Assembly: GCA_964270895.1 (NCBI GenBank)
Contig: OZ185442.1
Length of the DNA: 64,000 bases
Direction: 5' to 3' (one strand)
Source: Podarcis filfolensis
Taxonomy: Eukaryota
The notes beneath the pieces are model-generated. The model saw only the letters and a program-made list of their open reading frames with translations. It had not been told where the DNA came from and ran no database searches. Positions 9,069 to 52,000 of the stretch are shown piece after piece. A program made the position numbers and the translations under genes. Numbering within the stretch: the first letter of the stretch is position 1; the number at the start of each line of letters is the position of its first letter.

Positions 9069-11961
9069 CTCCTCCCACCCCACCGTGGGTCTCTTGCCCC
9101 CGACGGGGCGTGCGACAGCGACAGCCAGGTCCCAGGATCCCTCACAATGTAGCAGTCTTCCCCTGTGAGCTGAGTGCTCAACAGGCATTGCCTGCTGGGC
9201 TTTGCCCCCCGACCCCGGAGGGGGCAGCAGGGGAAAGACCCCAACTGTCTGGGGAAATGGCTGGCGGATTTTAACTCCACACCTAGACAGCTAATCTGCT
9301 TTTAATCATGACTCTGAAATCTACCTCTCTGCCTCTTTTTAACCACACTGTTCTCTGGACTGAAACGAGGAGCGTTTTTTGGCAAAGTTTGCCCCCGCAG
9401 GCTTCTTTTCTGACGCAGACGTTGGACTGCTGCGGAGACCACGTGGGCCGTGCTTTGCTCTGTCTGGTTTGAATAAGCTTAATCATTTCCCCCTCCTTTC
9501 TTCCCTCCCCCCTGGTGGGTTTCATGAAAGTAACTATTTCTTAAACCCTCTCCCCCATCCCCTTTGTTCTATTTTTAATTTAACACCTGGTTTGAATATA
9601 TTTTGTGTAAACGTTGGTTTCGGGCCCTCTGCGTGACCACAGGCTTAGCAAATGGGTTGCCTCCACTACGAGCTTCTCTCCACGTGAGAAAGCCTCGCTC
9701 TGCAGATTCTGACCTGGGGAAAGAGTTCCAAACCAGGGGCTGTTTAAAAAATGTAGCTTTTCTGAGGGCCCAAACCTCCCTTTTCCAATCACTTTAATTA
9801 TTTGGGGAGGGTTTATTTTTCCTGGGAGGGTTTTTGTTTTGTTTTGTTCTGTCTTCCTTTCTTTTTAAATGGTAGCTTTTGAAAGGTGCAGTAACGTTGC
9901 ATTAATTCTGTTGACATTTCTCCCTGCCTCCTCCTCACCCACACTGGTACGGCTGAAGGGATAAATCTGTGAAAAATGTGAAAAGGGTTTGCTTGCTTCA
10001 TTTTTGTTTTGTTCCCTACCCCCCAGGCTGTCTCAGGTTCAGAAATGCCTGCTGGTCTCCACTCCTTTATGTGCTCTTTGCTTTGTCTTGCCATTGCCAT
10101 CTTGTCACAGACAATTCCCCCACCATGACATTTATTATTATTTTTTGCGGGGGTGGGCAGAAGTGGTTCCCCTGATGCTGTGCGAACGGCGGGTCTTGCT
10201 GGGACTGGGCTGGATCATTTCTGAGCCTCGTTTGTTGGAACTGGATGCCTCTCTTGCCAGATAAGCTGTTCTCAAGCAACCCTCCCTAGGCTGTGCTGCC
10301 CCATTTCCACTCCCTTCCCATTTCCGGTCAGCCTTCATCACCCTTTCAAAAATTGTCTCAAAATGTGAGGTGTCCCCTCCCCACCCACCCTGTTGAACCA
10401 TTGGATGCCAGCAGAAGCAGCATTGCAGTATCCAGGAAGCGACACTGACCTGAAGGAAGTTGGCTCTGCAGTCTGGCTGGAGTGGGGCTGTTGGATGGCC
10501 CTGAGATGAATGAACCAGCCAAGGACAACGGCCTCCCTTAGTGTGAATGTTTTTGCATGGTTCAAAGAGGAGGACTAGCGAAGGTTGTAGATCCTGAAAT
10601 CTGACTTCAGCACAAGGAATTATTTTCTACTGACGAGAACTGCAAAAGAATTCTGCAAATCTCTTTAAAAAGAGAAAAGAAGAAAACCAACCACGTTGAA
10701 ACTTCCTTGCAGAACCTCTGTGCCTGATCTACACTCCCCTCCCCTCTGTGGGGCAGACTCTGCTTTGGTTGTTCTCTGGCTTTCTCATCGTTGCTAAGTT
10801 GGGAAACAGGGATGGAGTTAGGGAAACCCACATTTTGCTCTCTCACTAGGAATGGATGGTAACCAACCCCTCAAAGGTCACCAGCCCCCCCATGCAGTCT
10901 CGCCAAGAAACACAGCATAAACCTGCCTATAAGGCATTAGCTCTGTGGATCAAGCCAAAACTGGATTGGTGAACGCTAACAAGCTTAATGGCACCCCTTG
11001 CTTGGCCCAGGTGGGGGCAGTAAATTTGGGCTCCCATTTCACAGCCCCTTCTGTGGGCCAAACCTCTCCAGGTGAGCCAGTTGCTGTAGGCCCCTGGATC
11101 TTGTTTCCTGGGCCCCAGCCTCTCTGGTGGTTTTTGGGACTGTTGCTTGCAGCACCATCATAGCCCACAAGATGGAGAAATCCCTCAGTTGGGGGGTAAG
11201 ATATTTCCCCAACTCCAAAAAACTGAGTTGCCCATCTTGTCATCTGGAAGCACATGCGAGATGTCCTGCTTGAGCGGGGCCTGCACACCTCCAAAATGAA
11301 CTATTCTGCTGAAGACAGACCCATAGCAGTTCCCCTCAGTCCTACCTACAGCTTTCTATGGGGTTGCAGTCCCAGCTGACATGTTTTCTTAACAGTATTG
11401 GAAGGTGGGAGAAGAAGTGTAGGATGACAGGCGAGGTGTGGGCCTGCTTTCACGACAACTTTCTAGTCCACTTCCCAAGCAGGCGGTTTCTGTGGACTTC
11501 TCCTCTGCCTGGAATATTTCCTGTGTCAGTAGCAATAGAAGCCCCCTGGGCAGGGCCGGCTCTTCCTTCCCCTCTCGGAATTCAGGCAGGGCAGACTCTG
11601 CTCCCTCTGCTTCCTTTCTCTCTCTCATCTCCCCTTCACCAATACTGACCATCTTCCCCAGCAGAGCTGGCTGTGTGTTTTGCATTGGGACTCTCTCCAT
11701 CCTCAAAAAACATAGCAATACTCGACAGGCTGTCAAGCTGTGTGCTCCGCCCAACTCTGGACATGGTGATGAAAAGCAAACTGAAAGGAAATGGGGAGTG
11801 AGGGTGTGTGGAAATTGGGGTGAGCTGTCTGGGTTGTGTTTTTGTGGATTACAAGCCGGGTGAGACACCAGAGACAAAAGATCCTATTGTAAAAAAATTG
11901 CAAAGATAATTTGTATAGAGACCTATTTTTGTATTACATCCAACTATTCCTGCATGTCAGC

Positions 11962-30756: not shown

Positions 30757-32306
30757 GTCTAAGAGGTTCTGCTTCTGCCAGAGCTAAGAGTCGAAAGGTC
30801 CTGGCTAAGTGAATTTCTTCCCGTTCCCTTAAAAGGGGGCAAATGTCTTGATCCCTACAAGTGTGGGTGATGAGACCCCAAACAGTGTTAAACATTCTCT
30901 CTCTACTCACCTGCCTCCTTGAGTCCCTTTAGGGTTACGAGCAGGACAAACAAAGGCACGTGCCATAGAACATACCACTTATCAAGCGACATCTATTCTT
31001 TAGGAGGGAACCATGATACACAAACTGCCAAAAAAAATACAGGTTCGGAAACTCCCTTCAACCCCTTGAAGGAAACAAGAAGCCAAAACTTCAGGCAGAG
31101 TCTCTTCTTTCTGGCCAGAACGGACTGCCTGGAGCTCTGCCAAACTGGGAGCCTGGAGGTTCTGAGGGAAACTGGTTCTTAGCCAGGCTTGTGCATGTGC
31201 TTGTTTAGTTTCAAGTAGTCACGACCGTATCTCTCCTCTCCCCAAAGAAGCCTGGGACCAGGATATTGGGTGCCTGGCCAGTGCTCTTGATAGCCATTTT
31301 ATCCCTTTGAAAATCCAAGTTTCTAGCTGCAGAGAGGTCCTTTTTGCATGGGGCACCTTCTAAAGAGCATCTCATCAAAAGCAGGAGGACCTGAGTTCCT
31401 CTTTGGTCTCAGTAAGCCATGGTTTGGCCTAGTGCAACATGAGAACAAGGACAACAAAATAAGTAATGGAATAGAGACATCCAGAAGTTGTCTACGCTAG
31501 ACACTTACAGTTCCCCTAGAGTCCAACAGCACTTGTTTTGCACATTTAGCAGAGAGCTAACACACTGTTCCCTCATTTTTTATGGGACACCTACATGATG
31601 ATGCCACCCAGTTGTTATCCTCTTGTGTGTTCTCCACAGTATCGGCTTTTTCTTCATCCATCTTCCCTTAAAAGTCTCTGCACTACACCCGCTGTCACAG
31701 GTGTGCATTTAAATCTTTTTAGATATTGTCCATGGAGGATGGAGAGGTGGTTGTGGGTGTGCTGATGCACATCTAAACACTGTGTGGCTTGAATGCAGCC
31801 TATTCCACAAAGGTTAAGAGCCATGTCTGTCACTTCACAGTGATATTTGTAAGCACTGGAGTACAGTTATGGGAGCTGAACTCTACGAAGCCACAAAGCT
31901 CCGCCTCCAATTTGGGACTTACCTCCTTCTGTTAAATCATCCACATGCAGCCAAGGTCAACAACCAACAGACTGCAGAACAAGCCAATACAGAGACCATA
32001 AAGGGTGCTAATAGCTCGTGTAAAGTTCAGATTTCATCCAATGTAGACCAGCTATCAGTCTGTAGAAATGGGCTCTGAGCCTCACTCACAACAGATAAAT
32101 CGGAAGAGAGTCTTCACTGTTGCTTTCACAAACATCAAAGCTGGGGGCATGTGGAGTAGCCAGCTCCAGGGAACTACAAGCTTTTCCCTGCAGTCATGGT
32201 GGGAGCTGCTCCCCCCAATGCTTTCTTCCCCCTGATGGCTGGTAAGAGCAGTTACATCTGTTTCTGTTTGACTGGGAACATAGGCTGGAGACCTCCAAGT
32301 CGGCAG

Positions 32307-34746
<2,440 letters not shown>

Positions 34747-35251
34747 CTTCCTCAGCGTTGGCTGCCCTGGCAACCGCGTCTCTCGATGACGTCAGCGAAG
34801 CGCGACAAGCGCGGGCTCTTTTCTTCTTCCTTTTTCCTTAAGTTCCTCAGAGCGGCCGCTAAGTGGCGCTGTCCAGGCGCTCTCTTCGTTCTCCGGGCTG
34901 GATGACGGAGGCGAATGTCCTCCGTCATTTGCTTCCAAATTAATTGTTGGTACAATTACATTAAGCACCATCGGTCGAGGGTTTCTCAGCAGGCGCCTAT
35001 AATATCGTCCACTGCATTTTTAGTCTCTTGTTTCTCCAAATAACTGCCCCTTATTTTAGGGCTCATCCTATACGCTAATCCCTTATAACGGAAAGATGCA
35101 GGTTGATATACCAGTGTGATATGATATATTTAATGTAATATAATCTCCCCCCAACACACCTGCCCCCCCCCACTGCCCGCAGCCAAGTCTTGTTGGCAAC
35201 TGTTGGCGGCGAGCTCTCGCGAGGCTTGTTCGCAAGGCATCGCGCATGCGC

Positions 35252-36821
35252 CTTTGAGCCGCGCCATTTTGGAACTGGCTGGCAGACTGGAGCGAGGCCT
35301 TGTGGGCGCGGCGGGGGAGAAACGGCGGCAAAGAGGAGCGTTCAAAATCCGGGATCCCGACTGGAGCTGCTGTGCTTTGCCGGAACTGGGCTAGCAGGTG
35401 AGAGTCGCGGCGGCGACAACGCTTCCTCCTTCTCCTGCCACACCGCCGACCGGCCTGAGGGAAAAGGAGGCGGAGGAAACAATGTTTGCGTGTGGGGGGC
35501 GGGGCTCGTCCGTGGTGGGGGGGCGGAAGAGGGAGGAGAAGCCGGGCTCTGAGGCTCCCATAGTTCGGTCTTTCGCCCCCTGCCTCGAGCATGTGGCCTC
35601 TCCGTCCTTCCCCCGTCTCCTTTCTTCTTCCAAGGGGAAAAAATAATGGGACTGAAGTTCCGTTGGGGTCCAGCTTGGTCGAGGGGCGGCAGTTGGAGGC
35701 GGATTGCGAGGGAGGGAGGGAGAGTGTAGATAGGGCAACCTGGGACGGGGGGCGGGAGTCGTACCCGACTTTACCTGGCTATGAAATGGGAGGGGAGCAT
35801 AGCTGTCAACTTTCAGATTCGAAAATAAGGGATCAGCAGCCTCACCTGTCCCGGGGACAGTCTACGGGATATCTAACAATCCGGGATAGCAGCGGGAAAC
35901 GGCGCTGGAATAAGGGAAATTCCCGCAAAAAAGGGAAGGTTGACAGCTATGGAGGGCAGGAAACGCGCGCGCACTCCCGCAGGTTAGGCGCTGAGATCCA
36001 CGGGCGCTTTTCCTCCTCCGCCCCCACTTTCTTTCCTCGGGTCCCGGATCCTCTGGTGGTTTGCAGCGCCGTCCTGTTGCGTGTTTACTCGGAAGTAAGC
36101 CACACGGTGCGTAACGGGGACTTTTCCCAAGTAACTCTTATGCCTTGGGGTTGCAACTGCAACTCCTCCTTTCACCGAGGACTGCCTTCTCTTTGGCTAG
36201 TTGGGCCAAGGAGCGTGGTTGTTGAGTTTTAATTCCTCTAGTTTCCTTCGCGCCTGCCTCCCATGATAGTATCGCCGTTTCACCCTGCAGTAAGGCATTC
36301 TCACCTCCCCTTTTTGCTGCCGATTTTAGCGTATGCTTCCAGCGCAATCGGCGTGGATTTCGTTGCATGTTATTATTTTAAGGCTTCCTTGTTCACAAGT
36401 ACATGGTGTTCACGTCTGGAGAAAGGAACACTGATTGCAATGTGTCTTGTCTCTTCTTCCCAGCCTGGCCTTCTAGGTGATCTGGATTCTGAACATGAGG
36501 CCTGGATGTTTTGCAACCTGTTGCCTCAGCTTGTGGGGCAAAAAAGGTAGCTGGATTTTGACCAGCAGAGTCTGCTTCGGTTGAAAGGGAAAACGTTGAC
36601 TAAAAAGGGAATTGGGATTAAAACCAGCTCAGTCACTTTTCCACTTCAAACACTTCTGAAGTCTGCAGAACCCACCTCATGAACTTTTGAAATTCTCCTT
36701 AAATTCAGGATAACACCTTGGACTACTATTTTCCCACATGGAATGGATAATTGTATAAACTTCTTAAGTTCTGCATACTACTTTCAAGAGCTGTTTTTGC
36801 TTTCTGGTTCAAACATTTCAG
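35252..36821 (+). other. Putative spliced 5'UTR of the hAT-derived gene: exon 1 from about 35252 to 35397, optional exon 36464-36546, acceptor at 36821
   Basis: Donor CAG|GTGAGA after 35397; branch CTGAT plus pyrimidine tract and CAG at 36431-36463; donor AAG|GTAGCT after 36546; acceptor tttttgctttctggttcaaacatttcAG ending at 36821. Predicted from motifs only, and the transcription start is approximate. Confidence 0.55.
35798..35951. mobile_element. hAT MITE inside the CpG island / first intron of the hAT-derived gene
   Basis: 13-bp perfect TIR CATAGCTGTCAAC/GTTGACAGCTATG and 8-bp TSD gaggggag/gagggcag. Confidence 0.88.
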
Positions 36822-36855
36822 GCAAAACTGAGATTTAGTGCTTCTACGCAACAAA

Positions 36856-38802
36856 ATGCCGAAAAGAAAATGTAAATTTTCTGTTGGGCTACAGAAGAAG
36901 TATACCTGTTTTAGAAGAGGTAGAGATGATTTTGAAGGCGAATGCATGATATGTAAACCGGGTACATTTGTCTCTGTGGCAAATAAAGGAGGACGTGACT
37001 TGCAATCACACGTGGAGTCCGAAAAACACAAAAAAGCAATTCGAGGCGAAGCTTCTTCAGCACAATTAACAGACTTTTTCATAAAACCATGTAGCAAATT
37101 GGAAGATGAAGTAACCGCAGCTGAAGGAACTTTTGCTTTTCACACTGTTAAGCACCACAACAGTTATAACGTGATGGCGTGCACATCAGGCCTACTGAAG
37201 ACAACATTCCCGGATTCCAATATCGCAAGGAAGTTTTCAAGTGCAAAAACCAAGACAGAAGCAATTGTAAATTCTGTCTTGGCACCCGATTGTTTGGAAA
37301 ATGTTTTGAAAAGCATTGAAGAAAATGATATATGTTATTGTGGAGTTTCTACTGATGGGAGTAACCATGGTTCAGTAAAGGTGTTTCCAATAGTTATTCA
37401 GTATTTTGACTGGAAAAGTGGTGGTTTGCAGTCCAAAATAATTGAAATGCGAAGCCAACCCAATGAGACTGCAGATACAATCTTGTCATACGTGAAGGAA
37501 ACTCTTGAAAGTAAAGGACTGCTAAAGAAATGCATAGCATTCATAGGTGACAACTGCAACACAATGTTTGGAGGGATACGATGGGATTCAGAAGGAAGAA
37601 ATGTGTTCGCAAAGTTGAACAATGAGCTAGATAACAAAACTTTAATTGGTGTGGGATGTCCAGGACACATTTTGAATAATTGTGTTCATCAGGCAGCAGA
37701 AACTTTGGACATTGATGTTGAGAGCATCATTTTCAAGATATACCAGTACTTTCACATCTATACAGTCCAAACGGAGCAGTTAAAGGAGTACTGTGAATTT
37801 GTAGATACTGAATACAAAAAGCTGCTATCTCATAGTAAGACAAGGTGGTTGTCATTATTTCCAGGCGTCAATAGACTCATTCGCGTGTTTCCAGCTGTCA
37901 AGGCATTTTTTCTCTCGCAGAATAATCCACCAACAGTGTTAAAAAGGTTTTTTGAGCACGAGTTTAGTGAGGTTTATTTATTGCACTTGCAGTCTCTCAT
38001 GAGTATGTTTCACTCATATATTTTAGAACTCGAAAGGGAAAATAATTCAGTTGTAGAGGTTCTGAAAGTTCTGCTTTGTGTTCAGAATGTGCTCAATGAA
38101 CATAAAAGCAACAACTTTATGTCCCTCAAAGTTAAGAGCCTTCTAGAAGAAAAGCGTAAGGAGGGTCTTGGTGCAGAGTGTAACAAATTCTATGCAGAAG
38201 TAAATAGCTTATATGACAGCTGCATAGAATATCTGGGAAAATGGATGGAGTCCATGAAAGAGTTTTCATGTTTCATGTGGATGTCTCTTAGTGAGTCACT
38301 TGAGTGGGATAAGGTAGAACTTTCCATAAAATTTCTCCTGGACAGGGATGTGTCCATAGATGATGTGAAGTGCTTTGATCAATTCTGCAACCTCAAGAAG
38401 TTTGTGGATCAATACAAAGGTGATGATGGGTTCATTAATCTTCAGGCACATCAGAAGTGGACCAAGTACTTTGAGACTTCCCAAAACATGTGCCACTCAG
38501 AACTTTTGAAGATTGCACAGTTTTTTTTTGCTGTTGCATCACATGATAATGCAAATATGGAACACATTTTCTCTTTGATGCAGAGTTGGTGGAGCAAAGA
38601 AAGAGGCCACTTATCCTTGGAATCGCTGCGGAGTATACTGCTAGTACAATATAATTATAAGCACTTTACTTGCAAGGAATTTCATGCTTATCTCTTAAGC
38701 AATAAGCAGTTGTTGAATAAGATAAGATCTACAGAGAAATATGCTTGGGCCAGACAACATCAGAAAGAAGAACAAAGTGCATTTGAAAGTGACGTTCCAT
38801 GA
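36856..38802 (+). CDS. Intact hAT-superfamily transposase or transposase-derived protein, 648 aa, single coding exon (candidate domesticated gene)
   Basis: Uninterrupted 1947-nt ORF. It has an N-terminal CxxC-x18-H-x5-H BED-like zinc finger (36943-37029), catalytic-type D in STDGSN (37354), D in IGDNCNTM (37549), CPGH CxxH (37657-37668), KTRWLS, and C-terminal NANMEHIFS (E at 38560), which corresponds to the hAT ERxFS motif. A splice acceptor lies at 36821, 35 nt before the ATG. Confidence 0.93.
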   Translation: MPKRKCKFSVGLQKKYTCFRRGRDDFEGECMICKPGTFVSVANKGGRDLQSHVESEKHKKAIRGEASSAQLTDFFIKPCSKLEDEVTAAEGTFAFHTVKHHNSYNVMACTSGLLKTTFPDSNIARKFSSAKTKTEAIVNSVLAPDCLENVLKSIEENDICYCGVSTDGSNHGSVKVFPIVIQYFDWKSGGLQSKIIEMRSQPNETADTILSYVKETLESKGLLKKCIAFIGDNCNTMFGGIRWDSEGRNVFAKLNNELDNKTLIGVGCPGHILNNCVHQAAETLDIDVESIIFKIYQYFHIYTVQTEQLKEYCEFVDTEYKKLLSHSKTRWLSLFPGVNRLIRVFPAVKAFFLSQNNPPTVLKRFFEHEFSEVYLLHLQSLMSMFHSYILELERENNSVVEVLKVLLCVQNVLNEHKSNNFMSLKVKSLLEEKRKEGLGAECNKFYAEVNSLYDSCIEYLGKWMESMKEFSCFMWMSLSESLEWDKVELSIKFLLDRDVSIDDVKCFDQFCNLKKFVDQYKGDDGFINLQAHQKWTKYFETSQNMCHSELLKIAQFFFAVASHDNANMEHIFSLMQSWWSKERGHLSLESLRSILLVQYNYKHFTCKEFHAYLLSNKQLLNKIRSTEKYAWARQHQKEEQSAFESDVP

Positions 38803-38830
38803 GGTAATTAAAAGTAGAAGTTAGCAAATG

Positions 38831-38867
38831 TGTCCTCTTTTTTGTTCTTCAAAATATGGCAACCTTA
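38831..38867 (+). mobile_element. Right terminal inverted repeat/subterminal end of the hAT element (atatggcaacctta, with subterminal tgtcctctttttt)
   Basis: The reverse complement TAAGGTTGCCATAT resembles TAGGGTTGCCA-type hAT ends and the ends of the MITE at 51637-51824. It begins about 50 nt after the transposase stop codon. Confidence 0.7.
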
Positions 38868-39730
38868 GTCTGGAACTGAGAGGGGTGTTATGCACTGTTG
38901 ACACTAAATGTTTTGTACTGACAGTGTATGGTGAATGCTAATGTATAAGTTTGCTTGAAGACAGAGATGCATTATTAAACAGTCTGTCTCCCCACTCTGC
39001 CTCATATTTAAATCAAGCCTTGCAATTATGTATTTGTGCCCCATCTCTCAGCCTTAGTTCCCAAGGCAGCTTACAATGACATTTAAAAATCCACCCAAGA
39101 AATGAAAGGGCCCCTGAGCAAATGAATGGGGGAGGGCACAGGAGGGTGACACAGCCAAGAGGAGCCTTGGGGCAGAGCAGCAGTCCCCTAGGATTGCTAT
39201 CAGCCAGATAAGTCACTAAAGTGTAGTGCCAGTTCCCTCCCTTCAAAACATATTAGTATTAAAAGCTGAAAAGCTATAGGAGAGCCAGTATACTCGCACG
39301 CACCCTCCACTGGTGTAGACCATCTAGCAGGACCATCAAGACATTTTCAATACCAAATCTGGGTCAGAATCAATTTTATAGCAAATGTGGTTATAGTATG
39401 AACAAGAATTGAGAAAAAAGTATTTTAAGACAGTTTGCCAATCTGACTTACACTGCCACAATGATGTCTCCCAGCCCACATAAAGCCCCTGAACTCCTGG
39501 CTCACTGCCCCCTTGATCATGAGATGATGAGGTTCCTTACCACCTTCTCCCTTGAAAAAGTACTTAAAACGGAAGGAGGCAGTTGGACACTCGTTTTCCT
39601 CACGATGTGCTCTCAAGGCTCAGATTAATTCTACTGGACCCAACTTTTGCACAAATCCCTTGGAAAAGTGAAGTGAGTGCATGCACACTTTCTCTTGCAC
39701 ACCCCTGGTATCTATGATGTTAACTGTCGT

Positions 39731-49000: not shown

Positions 49001-52000
49001 GAGTGGGTGGGCCAAGCAGAGAGACTAACTTTTCCAGACTGTAAGCCTGAAGGCAAAGCTTATTCTTTCGCTTCCTAATGTGCCAATAAATATTTTTTGA
49101 AGTTTTTGTGTGTGTGTGAAAACCGCTTTAAACTGCTCATCCTTTAAAGCAGCATCAGCTGCTTACAAACAGCCAAGGCCTTTCCCTGCCCCACTCTGGA
49201 ACTCACCTGCACTCTGTCTTTCTTCTGGTTCCCATTGAGCTGCTTCATTCCAGGGTTTAGATAGCTGTCAAAGCAGTGAGGGAAGGAAATGAACAGGGTG
49301 AGCAAGCAGAGGTCAAATCCCAACTCAAGTCTGACTCACTGATTGGGTCTGGTTAAGTCTACTGTTGTGAAGTCTCACTCCCCCCAGTTATGGATTGGAC
49401 ATGTAATTTAGCTTTACAGCTTCTTGTTTGGTGGAATTAATGTCCCCTGACAAAACCAATGTGATCTTTATAAACAGCAACATTTGGGTGATTAATGAAA
49501 AAAACTAGTTGGATCTGCAACAAAGTGCTGCGGGTATAGCAGGGGTGCCCTCCAGGACTTGCAGGGGTGAGCAAGTAAGCAGGCACCAGCAGCACCATGG
49601 CCATTGCTGCTGCTTTATTGCCAGTGTTCGAAATTAGCCAGGAGCCAGGCGCATTTTGAACCTGACTATCGGCCACTTGCGAACAAATGAAGATGCCAGG
49701 GAGCCAGGATGGCGCCTGACATCTCAATCATCTGGAGGTACATGCTTGGGGATCATTGGATCTTGATTGTTTTCACACACTAATATCACATCCTGTAGAA
49801 TGCTATCTGTTATATTTTATCTGCACAGTCGGAACAAATTTCTAGAACCATTTTTTTTCCTGTGCAGCCTGAACAGGAGTGGTGAACAACATTAATGGTT
49901 GTACAAACCTAAAGTTATGGTGTTCCCTTGAATCCCACCTGTCTCCCAGAAAATAGTGACTCTTTGGAGGCGACCAGACAAAGCCAGAGACACTATGGTT
50001 TACAGAAGCCAGAAACGACCCCCAGCTTCGTACTGTAACAGCCCCCCAAAATGCAAACTGCCAAGCAGCTGCCTCTCTGTCTCACACCCACCCTTCTCTT
50101 CTGCCAACATCCCTAACTGTCAGCGACCATTAAAATCCCCCAACGCTCTTGAGGAGCAAATAAAGACTAGGGTCGTAATCCAGTCTCTAATATAGGATTA
50201 TGACTACTTCTACAAATTATACACTTTTTGGCCCAAAGGCCCCCAGAGTGGGAAACGGCATGTTAAAACAAAATATTTATTTCTTTAAAATATTTATAAA
50301 CTGCCTACTCCCATAAAATATATTAAGGCAATGTACAACAATGCACACACACACACACACACACACACACCCGTAAAGTGCCACAAAACAGTACAAAACA
50401 ATCATAAAAAAGACTGGCTCGTCTTTTTTTAAAATTTAAACAACTGAACAGGCCTGTCGACATGAAAAGATCTTCAAGAGACACCTGAAAGTCAAAAGCA
50501 AGGGATGCCCTCCTCTGGTTAATGGCAGTGATCAAGCTGGTGTCATTTCATGGAGTACAATAAATGTACATCAAATCAGCAAGCAAAGGCAGCCAAATCA
50601 CAAGAGGAAAAGCCTCCCCAAGCAAGATTACTTACAGGTGACTTCACCAACCCTCCACACACAGTGCCTTGAAGACTGAACAGACAAGAAGAACCACTTC
50701 TCTAAAAAAATGAGAAACACTTCTAGAAATATTTATTAAGTCCAACATGCCCCCCATTATATCTAGCAAAATATAGCCCCTCAATAGAAGCCTCATTATA
50801 CTTGTGTGCCCTGTCCCTCCGAAACCTCAGCCATGATCTCCAAAGTCAAAAGCACTTGCAGAAAGGTTCTAGTTCTCTCCTAATAATAATCATAATGATT
50901 CACCTCAGTCACTCTCCACAAGTCTCAGGCAAAGGGCTGAGTCACCTCTTCTCTCTGGGACCCTCCAAAAGCCACTAGACTTTGGACACACACACATACC
51001 CCCCCCCCCGTTTTTGGCCATGTTGGCTGGGGCCAATGGGAGCTGTAGTCCAAAGCATCTGAAGGGCACCAGGTTGAGGAAGGCTGCACTAAACATTGAC
51101 CACCAGATACACCGCTCCTTAAAGCAGCCTTTGTTGCCTGCCAGTAGATTGACTGTATTCCCAGAGGACGGTGGGATAAGAGGCGCTGAAATTCAGACTG
51201 TTCCGTTACCTTGCACATCTGCTTTGTAAGTCAGGAGCCCACGCATACACAATACTTGCTGGGGATAATGCCTGTGATGTTTGTGGGCTGACATCACAGA
51301 CTTGCTGCTGTCACAATCCAGGAGGGGAGTCTCCCTGGGACACACAACCTATTGTGGGGCCTTCTGTATGGGTACGGGAATCCCAAATGGGAAGGGTGTT
51401 GCTGTGGCACTCAGGTCCTCCTTGTGCGTTTCCCAGAGGGCCAGAGTAAGAACAGGATGAGAGACCCTCCAAGTGCCCCTATTTTCCAGGGACAGTCCTG
51501 GATTTACAGAAGCCGTTCCAGTTTCTGATTTGATCCCAGAATGTCCTGCTTTTCCTCTTTTCATCAGAGAAATGTGGGAGGGGATGCAGTTATGCGACCC
51601 TTGAGCTAAGGAGATAAGTAATTACAACCTTTAGAATGGGGTTGCTATATTCCCAAAAGCGAAAATCTGGACAAAGTTGTTGACCAAAAAACAAGTAAGT
51701 CTTTGGCCCTTTGGGGGGATTTTTAAAAGCATTTTTATTTTAAAAATCACCCTAGTTGCCCGGACAACATTTTGACAATGATTCCCAGACGTGTCCAGGA
51801 AAACCCAGACATATGGCAGCCCTACTTTAGAAGACATCTGAAGGCACCCCTGAATAGGGAAGTTTTTTAATGTTTAATGGTTTTTATATACATTGGAAGC
51901 CACCCAGAGTGGCTGGGGCAACCCAATCAGATGGGTGAGGTAATACTATTACTACTACTGAATAGGACGTCCCTATTTTCATCAGAGAAATGTTGGGGGG

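Follow-up and report, generated by a model that had tools for sequence, protein, structure and literature searches.

The stretch analysed here, referred to as the window, comprises 64,000 nucleotides (nt) of contig OZ185442.1 from the Podarcis filfolensis assembly GCA_964270895.1. Between the genes IQCC and DCDC2B it holds a long open reading frame (ORF) of transposase type that lies on the strand opposite to IQCC, behind a CpG island common to both. Here we describe this ORF, its transcript and its relatives, and conclude that it is very probably a host gene of the lacertid lineage derived from a Buster-type hAT transposon, a further case of a known kind of domestication. A fixed locus, an intact frame, purifying selection, + strand RNA and one spliced junction carry this reading and support the preliminary description of this DNA, in which a lizard-lineage host gene had been proposed from the letters alone.

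A hAT transposase coding sequence

In a six-frame ORF list the frame occupies 36838..38802 on the + strand, with 654 amino acids (aa) from a GTG start and the 648 codons of Table 1 from the ATG. The region has a GC content of 0.38, against 0.53-0.66 across the CpG-rich stretch upstream. The ORF list and an alignment of homologues confirm what had first been read in the sequence, namely a stop-free 648-aa hAT ORF with a BED-like finger and the residues D, D, CxxH and E. In the alignment of 31 homologues, D167, D232, C268xxH271, W331 (within a TRWLS motif) and E569 stand in columns with no variation or with conservation of 90% or more. The four finger ligands (C30, C33, H52 and H58) vary little or not at all, both there and in all three lacertid paralogues (the IQCC-linked copy, c1, and two others, c2 and c3). 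The two aspartates are equated with the catalytic pair of hAT transposases by motif and predicted strand position, not by residue-level structural superposition.

Pfam is silent on the protein itself. A scan of the 648-aa sequence gives no match to PF05699 (hAT dimerisation) even at E<=1, the sole match being a sub-threshold zf-DBF, and none of the Pfam zinc-finger models, including BED (PF02892), rises above threshold. Nothing exceeds threshold in the proteins of paralogues c2, c3 and c4, and a single-sequence search of the 648-aa protein against PDB sequences returns no match. Its hAT identity is drawn from homologous proteins, from a profile of the family and from fold prediction. A large protein search yields 159 relatives, several of them with PF05699 or a FAM200/GTF2IRD2 helical domain; PF05699 is matched by 19 of the 31 aligned homologues, and the neighbours of the protein in a language-model atlas are clusters with DUF4371, FAM200-ZBED5 RNase-like and hAT dimerisation domains. 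A profile built from the 31 relatives matches the C-terminus of the Hermes transposase (E 1.5e-4), placing E569 on the glutamate of SERTFS. An AlphaFold2 model (predicted local distance difference test score 81.3, predicted template modelling score 0.73) has Hermes chains as its 12 top PDB matches (E 3e-8 to 4e-6; template modelling (TM) score by target 0.63-0.66 at best). These sequence and model comparisons assign the protein to the Buster/FAM200 type of hAT transposases.

Hermes, from Musca domestica (PDB 2BW3, 4D1Q, 6DWW, 8SJD), is the best match among solved structures, with the C-terminal domain and the catalytic Glu in register. It is, however, an active Ac-clade element with both terminal inverted repeats (TIRs), whereas the lizard gene, at 14-15% identity, derives from the Buster clade, retains one TIR and has a transcript of host type.

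Table 1. Coordinates of the transposase-derived gene and associated features in the window
Feature	Position	Strand	Details
Coding sequence, Buster-type hAT transposase-derived protein	36856..38802	+	648 codons and stop, from ATG; starts MPKRK
BED-like zinc finger, C30-x2-C33-x18-H52-x5-H58	36943..37029	+	Homologue alignment
D167 codon, first catalytic Asp	37354..37356	+	STDGSN motif, end of predicted strand 162-166
D232 codon, second catalytic Asp	37549..37551	+	Invariant column, GDNCN motif, after predicted strand 226-230
C268-x2-H271 motif	37657..37668	+	Homologue alignment; weak alignment to Hermes CSSH
E569 codon, catalytic Glu	38560..38562	+	NMEHIFS; aligns with Hermes SERTFS glutamate in profile search
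CpG island, bidirectional promoter common to IQCC	35180..35760	.	GC 0.64, CpG observed/expected 0.83
CpG-island motifs	35215; 35242-35251; 35262-35270		TCTCGCGAG at 35215; NRF1 palindrome; YY1-type core
Non-coding exon 1	35287..35397	+	5' end at or upstream of 35287; donor CAG/GT at 35397/35398; RNA contig
Intron 1, 1066 nt	35398..36463	+	RNA junction; acceptor AG 36462-36463
Exon 2	36464..39061	+	392-nt 5' untranslated region (UTR), whole coding sequence, 3' UTR; 3' end approximate; candidate ATTAAA 38974-38979
AG of acceptor 35 nt before ATG	36820..36821	+	Present in sequence; RNA contigs read through
Right subterminal region and TIR remnant	38831..38867	+	Ends ...ATATGGCAACCTTA; 35/37 identical to right end of mobile relative
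Miniature inverted-repeat transposable element (MITE), ~190 bp	51633..51825	.	Both ends resemble the TIR of the hAT family; 38-nt match, 89%, to left end of mobile relative; TIR pattern with 2 mismatches

Promoter, leader exon and transcription

The preliminary description had placed a splice donor at 35397, downstream of NRF1 and YY1-type motifs in the IQCC CpG island, and all of these are found in the sequence. Promoter core and donor hardly change between Podarcis and Zootoca, the donor being kept in P. raffonei, P. lilfordi and Zootoca, and five lacertids share the acceptor at 36464. Conservation is no higher in the 5' UTR exon than in the intron (divergence 5.4-5.6% vs 5.3-7.6%), and an Rfam scan of 34800-39400 finds no RNA family.

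Four RNA runs were aligned to 34900-39400. In run X3 a contig of k-mer depth 4.4 joins 35287-35397 to 36464-36857, skipping 1066 nt with GT..AG ends, which is the 35397->36464 junction that had been predicted. Contiguous exon 2 contigs come from X1 (36126-36917 and 38452-39061), X3 (36461-36857) and X9 (36399-36767 and 36743-37254), and RNA depth drops past ~39060. All reads of the stranded run X23 over 36561-38976 have their first mate on the minus strand, and all its IQCC-side reads (34900-35050) have it on the plus strand; IQCC and the ORF gene are therefore transcribed divergently, with the ORF RNA on the + strand. The proposal of a captured bidirectional promoter common to IQCC agrees with these divergent reads on either side of the CpG island. 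Since the IQCC-side contigs end at 35151 and exon 1 extends from 35287 or upstream, the two 5' ends lie ~130 bp apart. Depth in run X1 is zero at 35202-35654 and 35957-36107 and 20-150 over the ORF, and these gaps argue against contamination by genomic DNA. Expression is of the host type, as spliced + strand RNA from the CpG-island promoter, with thin support for the junction itself.

The acceptor 35 nt before the ATG, to which a junction at 36822 had also been assigned, is present in the sequence but is not used in the contigs seen, nor is it conserved in the other two genera: a 14-nt deletion removes the AG in Zootoca, and Lacerta agilis has CGG. At the equivalent place, where homology among the paralogues sets in, c2 and c3 show a pyrimidine tract and AG. 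Because these sites match in place, the RNA reads through and Zootoca and Lacerta have lost the site, the AG is probably the acceptor of an intron in the 5' UTR of the transposon itself, kept in Podarcis and unused by the IQCC-linked gene.

The transcript also bears on whether the ORF might be one exon of a larger host-transposase fusion, the 648-aa protein not being a real product. Capture of a transposase by splicing is a known route, and one RefSeq isoform of c3 in P. muralis has 53 extra N-terminal residues (678 vs 625 aa). At the IQCC locus, however, the frame is closed by stops 9 and 36 codons ahead of the ATG, no ATG occurs in exon 1, the annotated orthologues are all 648 aa long, and the contigs run on unspliced beyond the stop to ~39061. 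A fusion is thus very improbable. The stop codon is followed directly by a donor-like GAG/GTAAT (38800-38808), which is GGTAAC in the mobile relative described below; the RNA contigs continue across it unspliced.

Intron 1 holds an unrelated 154-bp MITE (35798-35951) with 17-nt inverted arms that are 94% complementary (CATAGCTGTCAACTTTC / GAAGGTTGACAGCTATG). Over this MITE the RNA contigs are 10-80 times as deep as over the gene, and its reads have unrelated flanks, so that it represents a high-copy element embedded in many transcripts. Intron 1 of P. raffonei has an extra insertion of ~1.07 kb (L001 7886-8955, against window 35826), and Zootoca is without ~4 kb present in the window at 30972-34968, around the IQCC gene body.

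Constraint and paralogy in lacertid lizards

In a protein cluster at 90% identity, P. raffonei, P. lilfordi, P. muralis and Zootoca vivipara are each represented by a single protein of 648 aa. Compared with these, the window protein shows 7, 8, 9 and 28 changed residues, respectively, none of them catalytic or in the finger, and the full catalytic set and the finger are kept by the IQCC-linked copy in all five species. P. raffonei, P. lilfordi and Zootoca each have an intact copy of the gene between IQCC and DCDC2B, at loci that are colinear with the window (an IQ-motif gene and/or EVA1B upstream, the DCX-domain gene DCDC2B downstream); P. muralis was compared as protein P0123 only. The Lacerta agilis locus, reached via its neighbour EVA1B, aligns up to window position 36887, which takes in promoter, donor and 36464 acceptor together with the start codon and codons 1-10; the outgroup sequence from Rhineura ends short of the site. 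With one protein per species in the 90% cluster, there is no swarm of near-identical annotated copies.

The four coding sequences compared are all 1947 nt long and have no indel. Between the window and Zootoca there are 70 differences, distributed 15/15/40 over the three codon positions. The Nei-Gojobori method (NG86) gives a non-synonymous rate (dN) of 0.0185, a synonymous rate (dS) of 0.117 and a ratio (omega) of 0.158 (bootstrap 95% interval 0.10-0.25); maximum likelihood gives omega 0.28 with dS 0.071, near the flanking non-coding divergence of 0.060. A Fisher test on the two classes of change, non-synonymous and synonymous, returns p 4e-14. The flanks, with 44 indel events in 5.1 kb, predict 16.7 for the ORF, which has 0 (Poisson P 6e-8). 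As this comparison is between orthologous copies after insertion, the constraint acts on the host locus and not on a replicating transposon lineage. Spliced transcripts, orthologous insertions, dN/dS and copy number had been put forward beforehand as the means of checking the proposal, and each, copy number being judged on annotated proteins, came out on the side of a host gene.

On these figures it is hardly credible that the ORF is a decaying transposon copy, its frame intact by chance and its RNA read-through from the CpG island. The GC content of 0.38, the transposon-type ORF, the retained right TIR and the unspliced contigs upstream of the ORF would suit such a copy, but the excess of third-position changes, the omega interval, the Fisher test, the absence of indels where ~17 are expected and the equal length in five species would not.

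Annotated-genome proteins above 60% identity come only from lacertids, some fishes and unnamed contigs, while in snakes, a skink and Sceloporus the best identity is 46-58%. Within lacertids there are two more clusters, c2 and c3, at 84% identity. Cluster c2, from L. agilis, Zootoca and three Podarcis species, is located between JTB and an Arf-family gene (L002, L016, ORF at 10001); c3, from three Podarcis species, stands beside INTS5 and a DUF5564 gene (L015, ORF at 10001). A tree of 43 relatives unites c1, c2 and c3 in one clade (support 97) with the mobile relative as its sister group (support 100), and the branching inside each lacertid cluster follows that of the species. The three loci are homologous only between a point ~18 nt ahead of the ATG and the last position of the right TIR, and they therefore arrived as transposon copies rather than by segmental duplication. 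Each of them is on the strand opposite to its upstream gene (JTB for c2, the DUF5564 gene for c3), with a CpG island between.

The catalytic sites of the three genes have had different fates. In c2, for which omega is 0.10-0.17 (L. agilis vs Zootoca), E569 is replaced by Gly and five residues are deleted in all five species; in c3, D167 is replaced by Gly in all three species. Neither should be able to cleave DNA, since E569G and D167G remove catalytic residues, and the conservation of such dead paralogues argues that the host role of the family needs no transposition. The full catalytic site in the IQCC-linked copy leaves room for a putative cleavage activity. Four P. lilfordi proteins representing the three paralogues (P0121, P0128, P0130, P0131) are labelled 'golgin subfamily A member 6C', which looks like automatic mis-naming and has no backing in sequence or fold. 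The other database names for the lizard genes are 'uncharacterized LOC', and a literature search found no paper describing these lacertid genes.

Whole-length fold matches (Foldseek E 1e-16 to 1e-12, TM 0.5-0.67) link the protein to human ZBED5, FAM200A/B/C, SCAND3 (ZBED9), ZMYM6, ZMYM1, ZNF862, KIAA1586, EPM2AIP1 and GTF2IRD2. Like these domesticated Buster/Charlie-type hAT genes, the lizard gene has its coding sequence in one exon, is no longer mobile and occupies a fixed place in the genome. Unlike them, it keeps D-D-E, CxxH and W and has no SCAN, MYM or GTF2I fusion. Its identity to them is 11-16%, which points to an independent domestication with no orthologue among those human genes. From sequence comparison, the domestication is much younger than that of the human Buster/Charlie-type genes and is seen only in lacertid lizards. 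The parallel with ZBED genes that had been drawn earlier therefore stands for the type of domestication but not for membership of that family, given the lack of a BED match in Pfam and identities of 14% to ZBED5 and 11-14% to ZBED1/4. A further parallel is offered by the plant genes DAYSLEEPER / RICESLEEPER, which share the fold and are likewise immobile hAT genes under selection that have kept a BED-type finger and, as is predicted for the lizard protein, a dimerisation domain; they differ in belonging to the Ac clade and a plant lineage, in having lost the catalytic residues and in their 10-12% identity.

Element ends, the mobile relative and possible function

The right TIR remnant is found in all orthologues, and homology among the paralogues stops at its end. 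Over 1.5-2 kb upstream of the ORF, neither pattern search nor Smith-Waterman comparison with shuffled controls reveals a left TIR. The 354-nt left end of the mobile relative, compared with 2 kb upstream of each paralogue by fuzzy search and Smith-Waterman, scores within the shuffled range, with the sole exception of a marginal Smith-Waterman score for c2 in Zootoca. The window copy does not have the two-TIR structure with an 8-bp target-site duplication (TSD); with a right TIR only and no TSD, it is therefore a derivative and not a complete element. The preliminary description was right that no left TIR can be recognised, but the element is not TIR-free, since the right one survives.

Other candidate ends were rejected. 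An inverted-repeat scan returns a lone 70% pair at 36520/38837, judged to be chance and not a TIR pair. As a TSD, GTCTGGAG (36414-36421) matches the right flank GTCTGGAA at 7/8 positions, with no abutting TIR and, by estimate, within chance. A hand alignment of 36433-36446 to TIR positions 4-17 (11/14), with a T-rich tract beside the 36464 acceptor, is suggestive and without statistical support; if true, this acceptor would stem from a subterminal motif of the transposon.

The mobile relative ('cluster 4'; loci L004-L013, L019) comes from runs ERR3138735-776 and ERR4842565 and assemblies ERZ3898123/182, in contigs of 2.5-3.7 kb with AT-rich flanks, and its protein is identical in 146 samples. 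That protein likewise has 648 aa and is 79% identical to the window protein; at the nucleotide level identity is 82.7% over 36848-38793, followed by the matching right end (Table 1). The relative carries both TIRs (TAGGGTTGCCATATGTCC... / ...ATATGGCAACCCTA), and a distance of 354 nt separates its left end from the ATG. One copy is frameshifted yet 99.9% identical to another, which together with the two TIRs indicates a recently active family, and the relative is apparently an autonomous, active hAT element. Protein P0124, listed in cluster 1, proved to be a frameshifted copy of this relative and not a lizard orthologue. Whole-ORF homology, the length of 648 aa and the right end are thus common to the window copy and its sister group, whereas both TIRs (TAGGGTTGCCATATG...), the 354-nt 5' leader and many near-identical copies belong to the relative and not to the window copy. 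The MITE at 51633-51825 indicates that the hAT family was once active in this genome as well.

Together with the near-identity of the right TIR to that of the mobile relative and the retention of catalytic residues and finger in all five species, this MITE would fit an immobile but active source of transposase that mobilises related MITEs in trans, its conservation being a matter of transposon family biology. A copy that is unable to replicate, however, gains nothing from mobilising others, so that selfish selection cannot explain an omega of 0.16 and zero indels at one locus from Podarcis to Zootoca. Paralogues that have lost a catalytic residue are just as conserved (c2 omega 0.10), which points to a role other than transposition. 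We hold such a trans-acting source to be decidedly unlikely.

Several points nevertheless weigh against a domesticated host gene. The junction 35397->36464 was seen in one assembled contig of one run, the X1 and X9 contigs beginning at 36126 and 36399 pass the 36464 acceptor unspliced, so that transcripts may often start internally or retain the intron, and the 392-nt 5' UTR contains several upstream ATGs. The 648-aa product is predicted from the ORF. Copy number is gauged indirectly, from annotated proteins; the ORF comparison with L. agilis covers codons 1-10, and the 90% cluster has no protein from that species. Finally, ORF and right end differ little from those of the active element, and the function need not differ from transposase activity.

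As a domesticated gene, the locus very probably arose as follows. A hAT element inserted ~1.1-1.5 kb downstream of the IQCC CpG-island promoter, on the strand opposite to IQCC, before Podarcis, Zootoca and Lacerta diverged; it is unable to move itself because its left end is no longer recognisable. Transcription starts in the common CpG island, ~130 bp from the IQCC 5' exon, and a short non-coding exon ending at 35397 is spliced to 36464, the second exon carrying the complete 648-codon ORF. Through its N-terminal zinc finger and predicted hAT oligomerisation domain the protein may act as a sequence-specific DNA-binding factor, and it probably still recognises the ends of its own family, for example its own right end and related MITEs. 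Residual DNA cleavage is possible for the IQCC-linked copy, the sole one of the three to keep D-D-E, CxxH and W. That this copy is a still-active domesticated nuclease or recombinase, working on MITE ends or its own right TIR in hetero-oligomers with the dead c2 (E569G) and c3 (D167G), seems unlikely; if true, it would constitute a lineage-specific system of programmed DNA cleavage or transposon control, with a logic analogous to that of RAG1 or PGBD5.

Domesticated transposases have given vertebrates both regulators and recombinases, and in most known cases the events are ancient and the steps of capture have been erased. Here these steps can still be read, with a mobile relative for comparison, one remaining TIR, a captured bidirectional CpG-island promoter and a new leader exon. 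The three paralogues combine different fates of the catalytic site with purifying selection where it is measurable (c1, c2). Lacertid lizards thus offer a usable system for studying the conversion of a transposase into a host gene and the question whether catalysis is kept for a host purpose.

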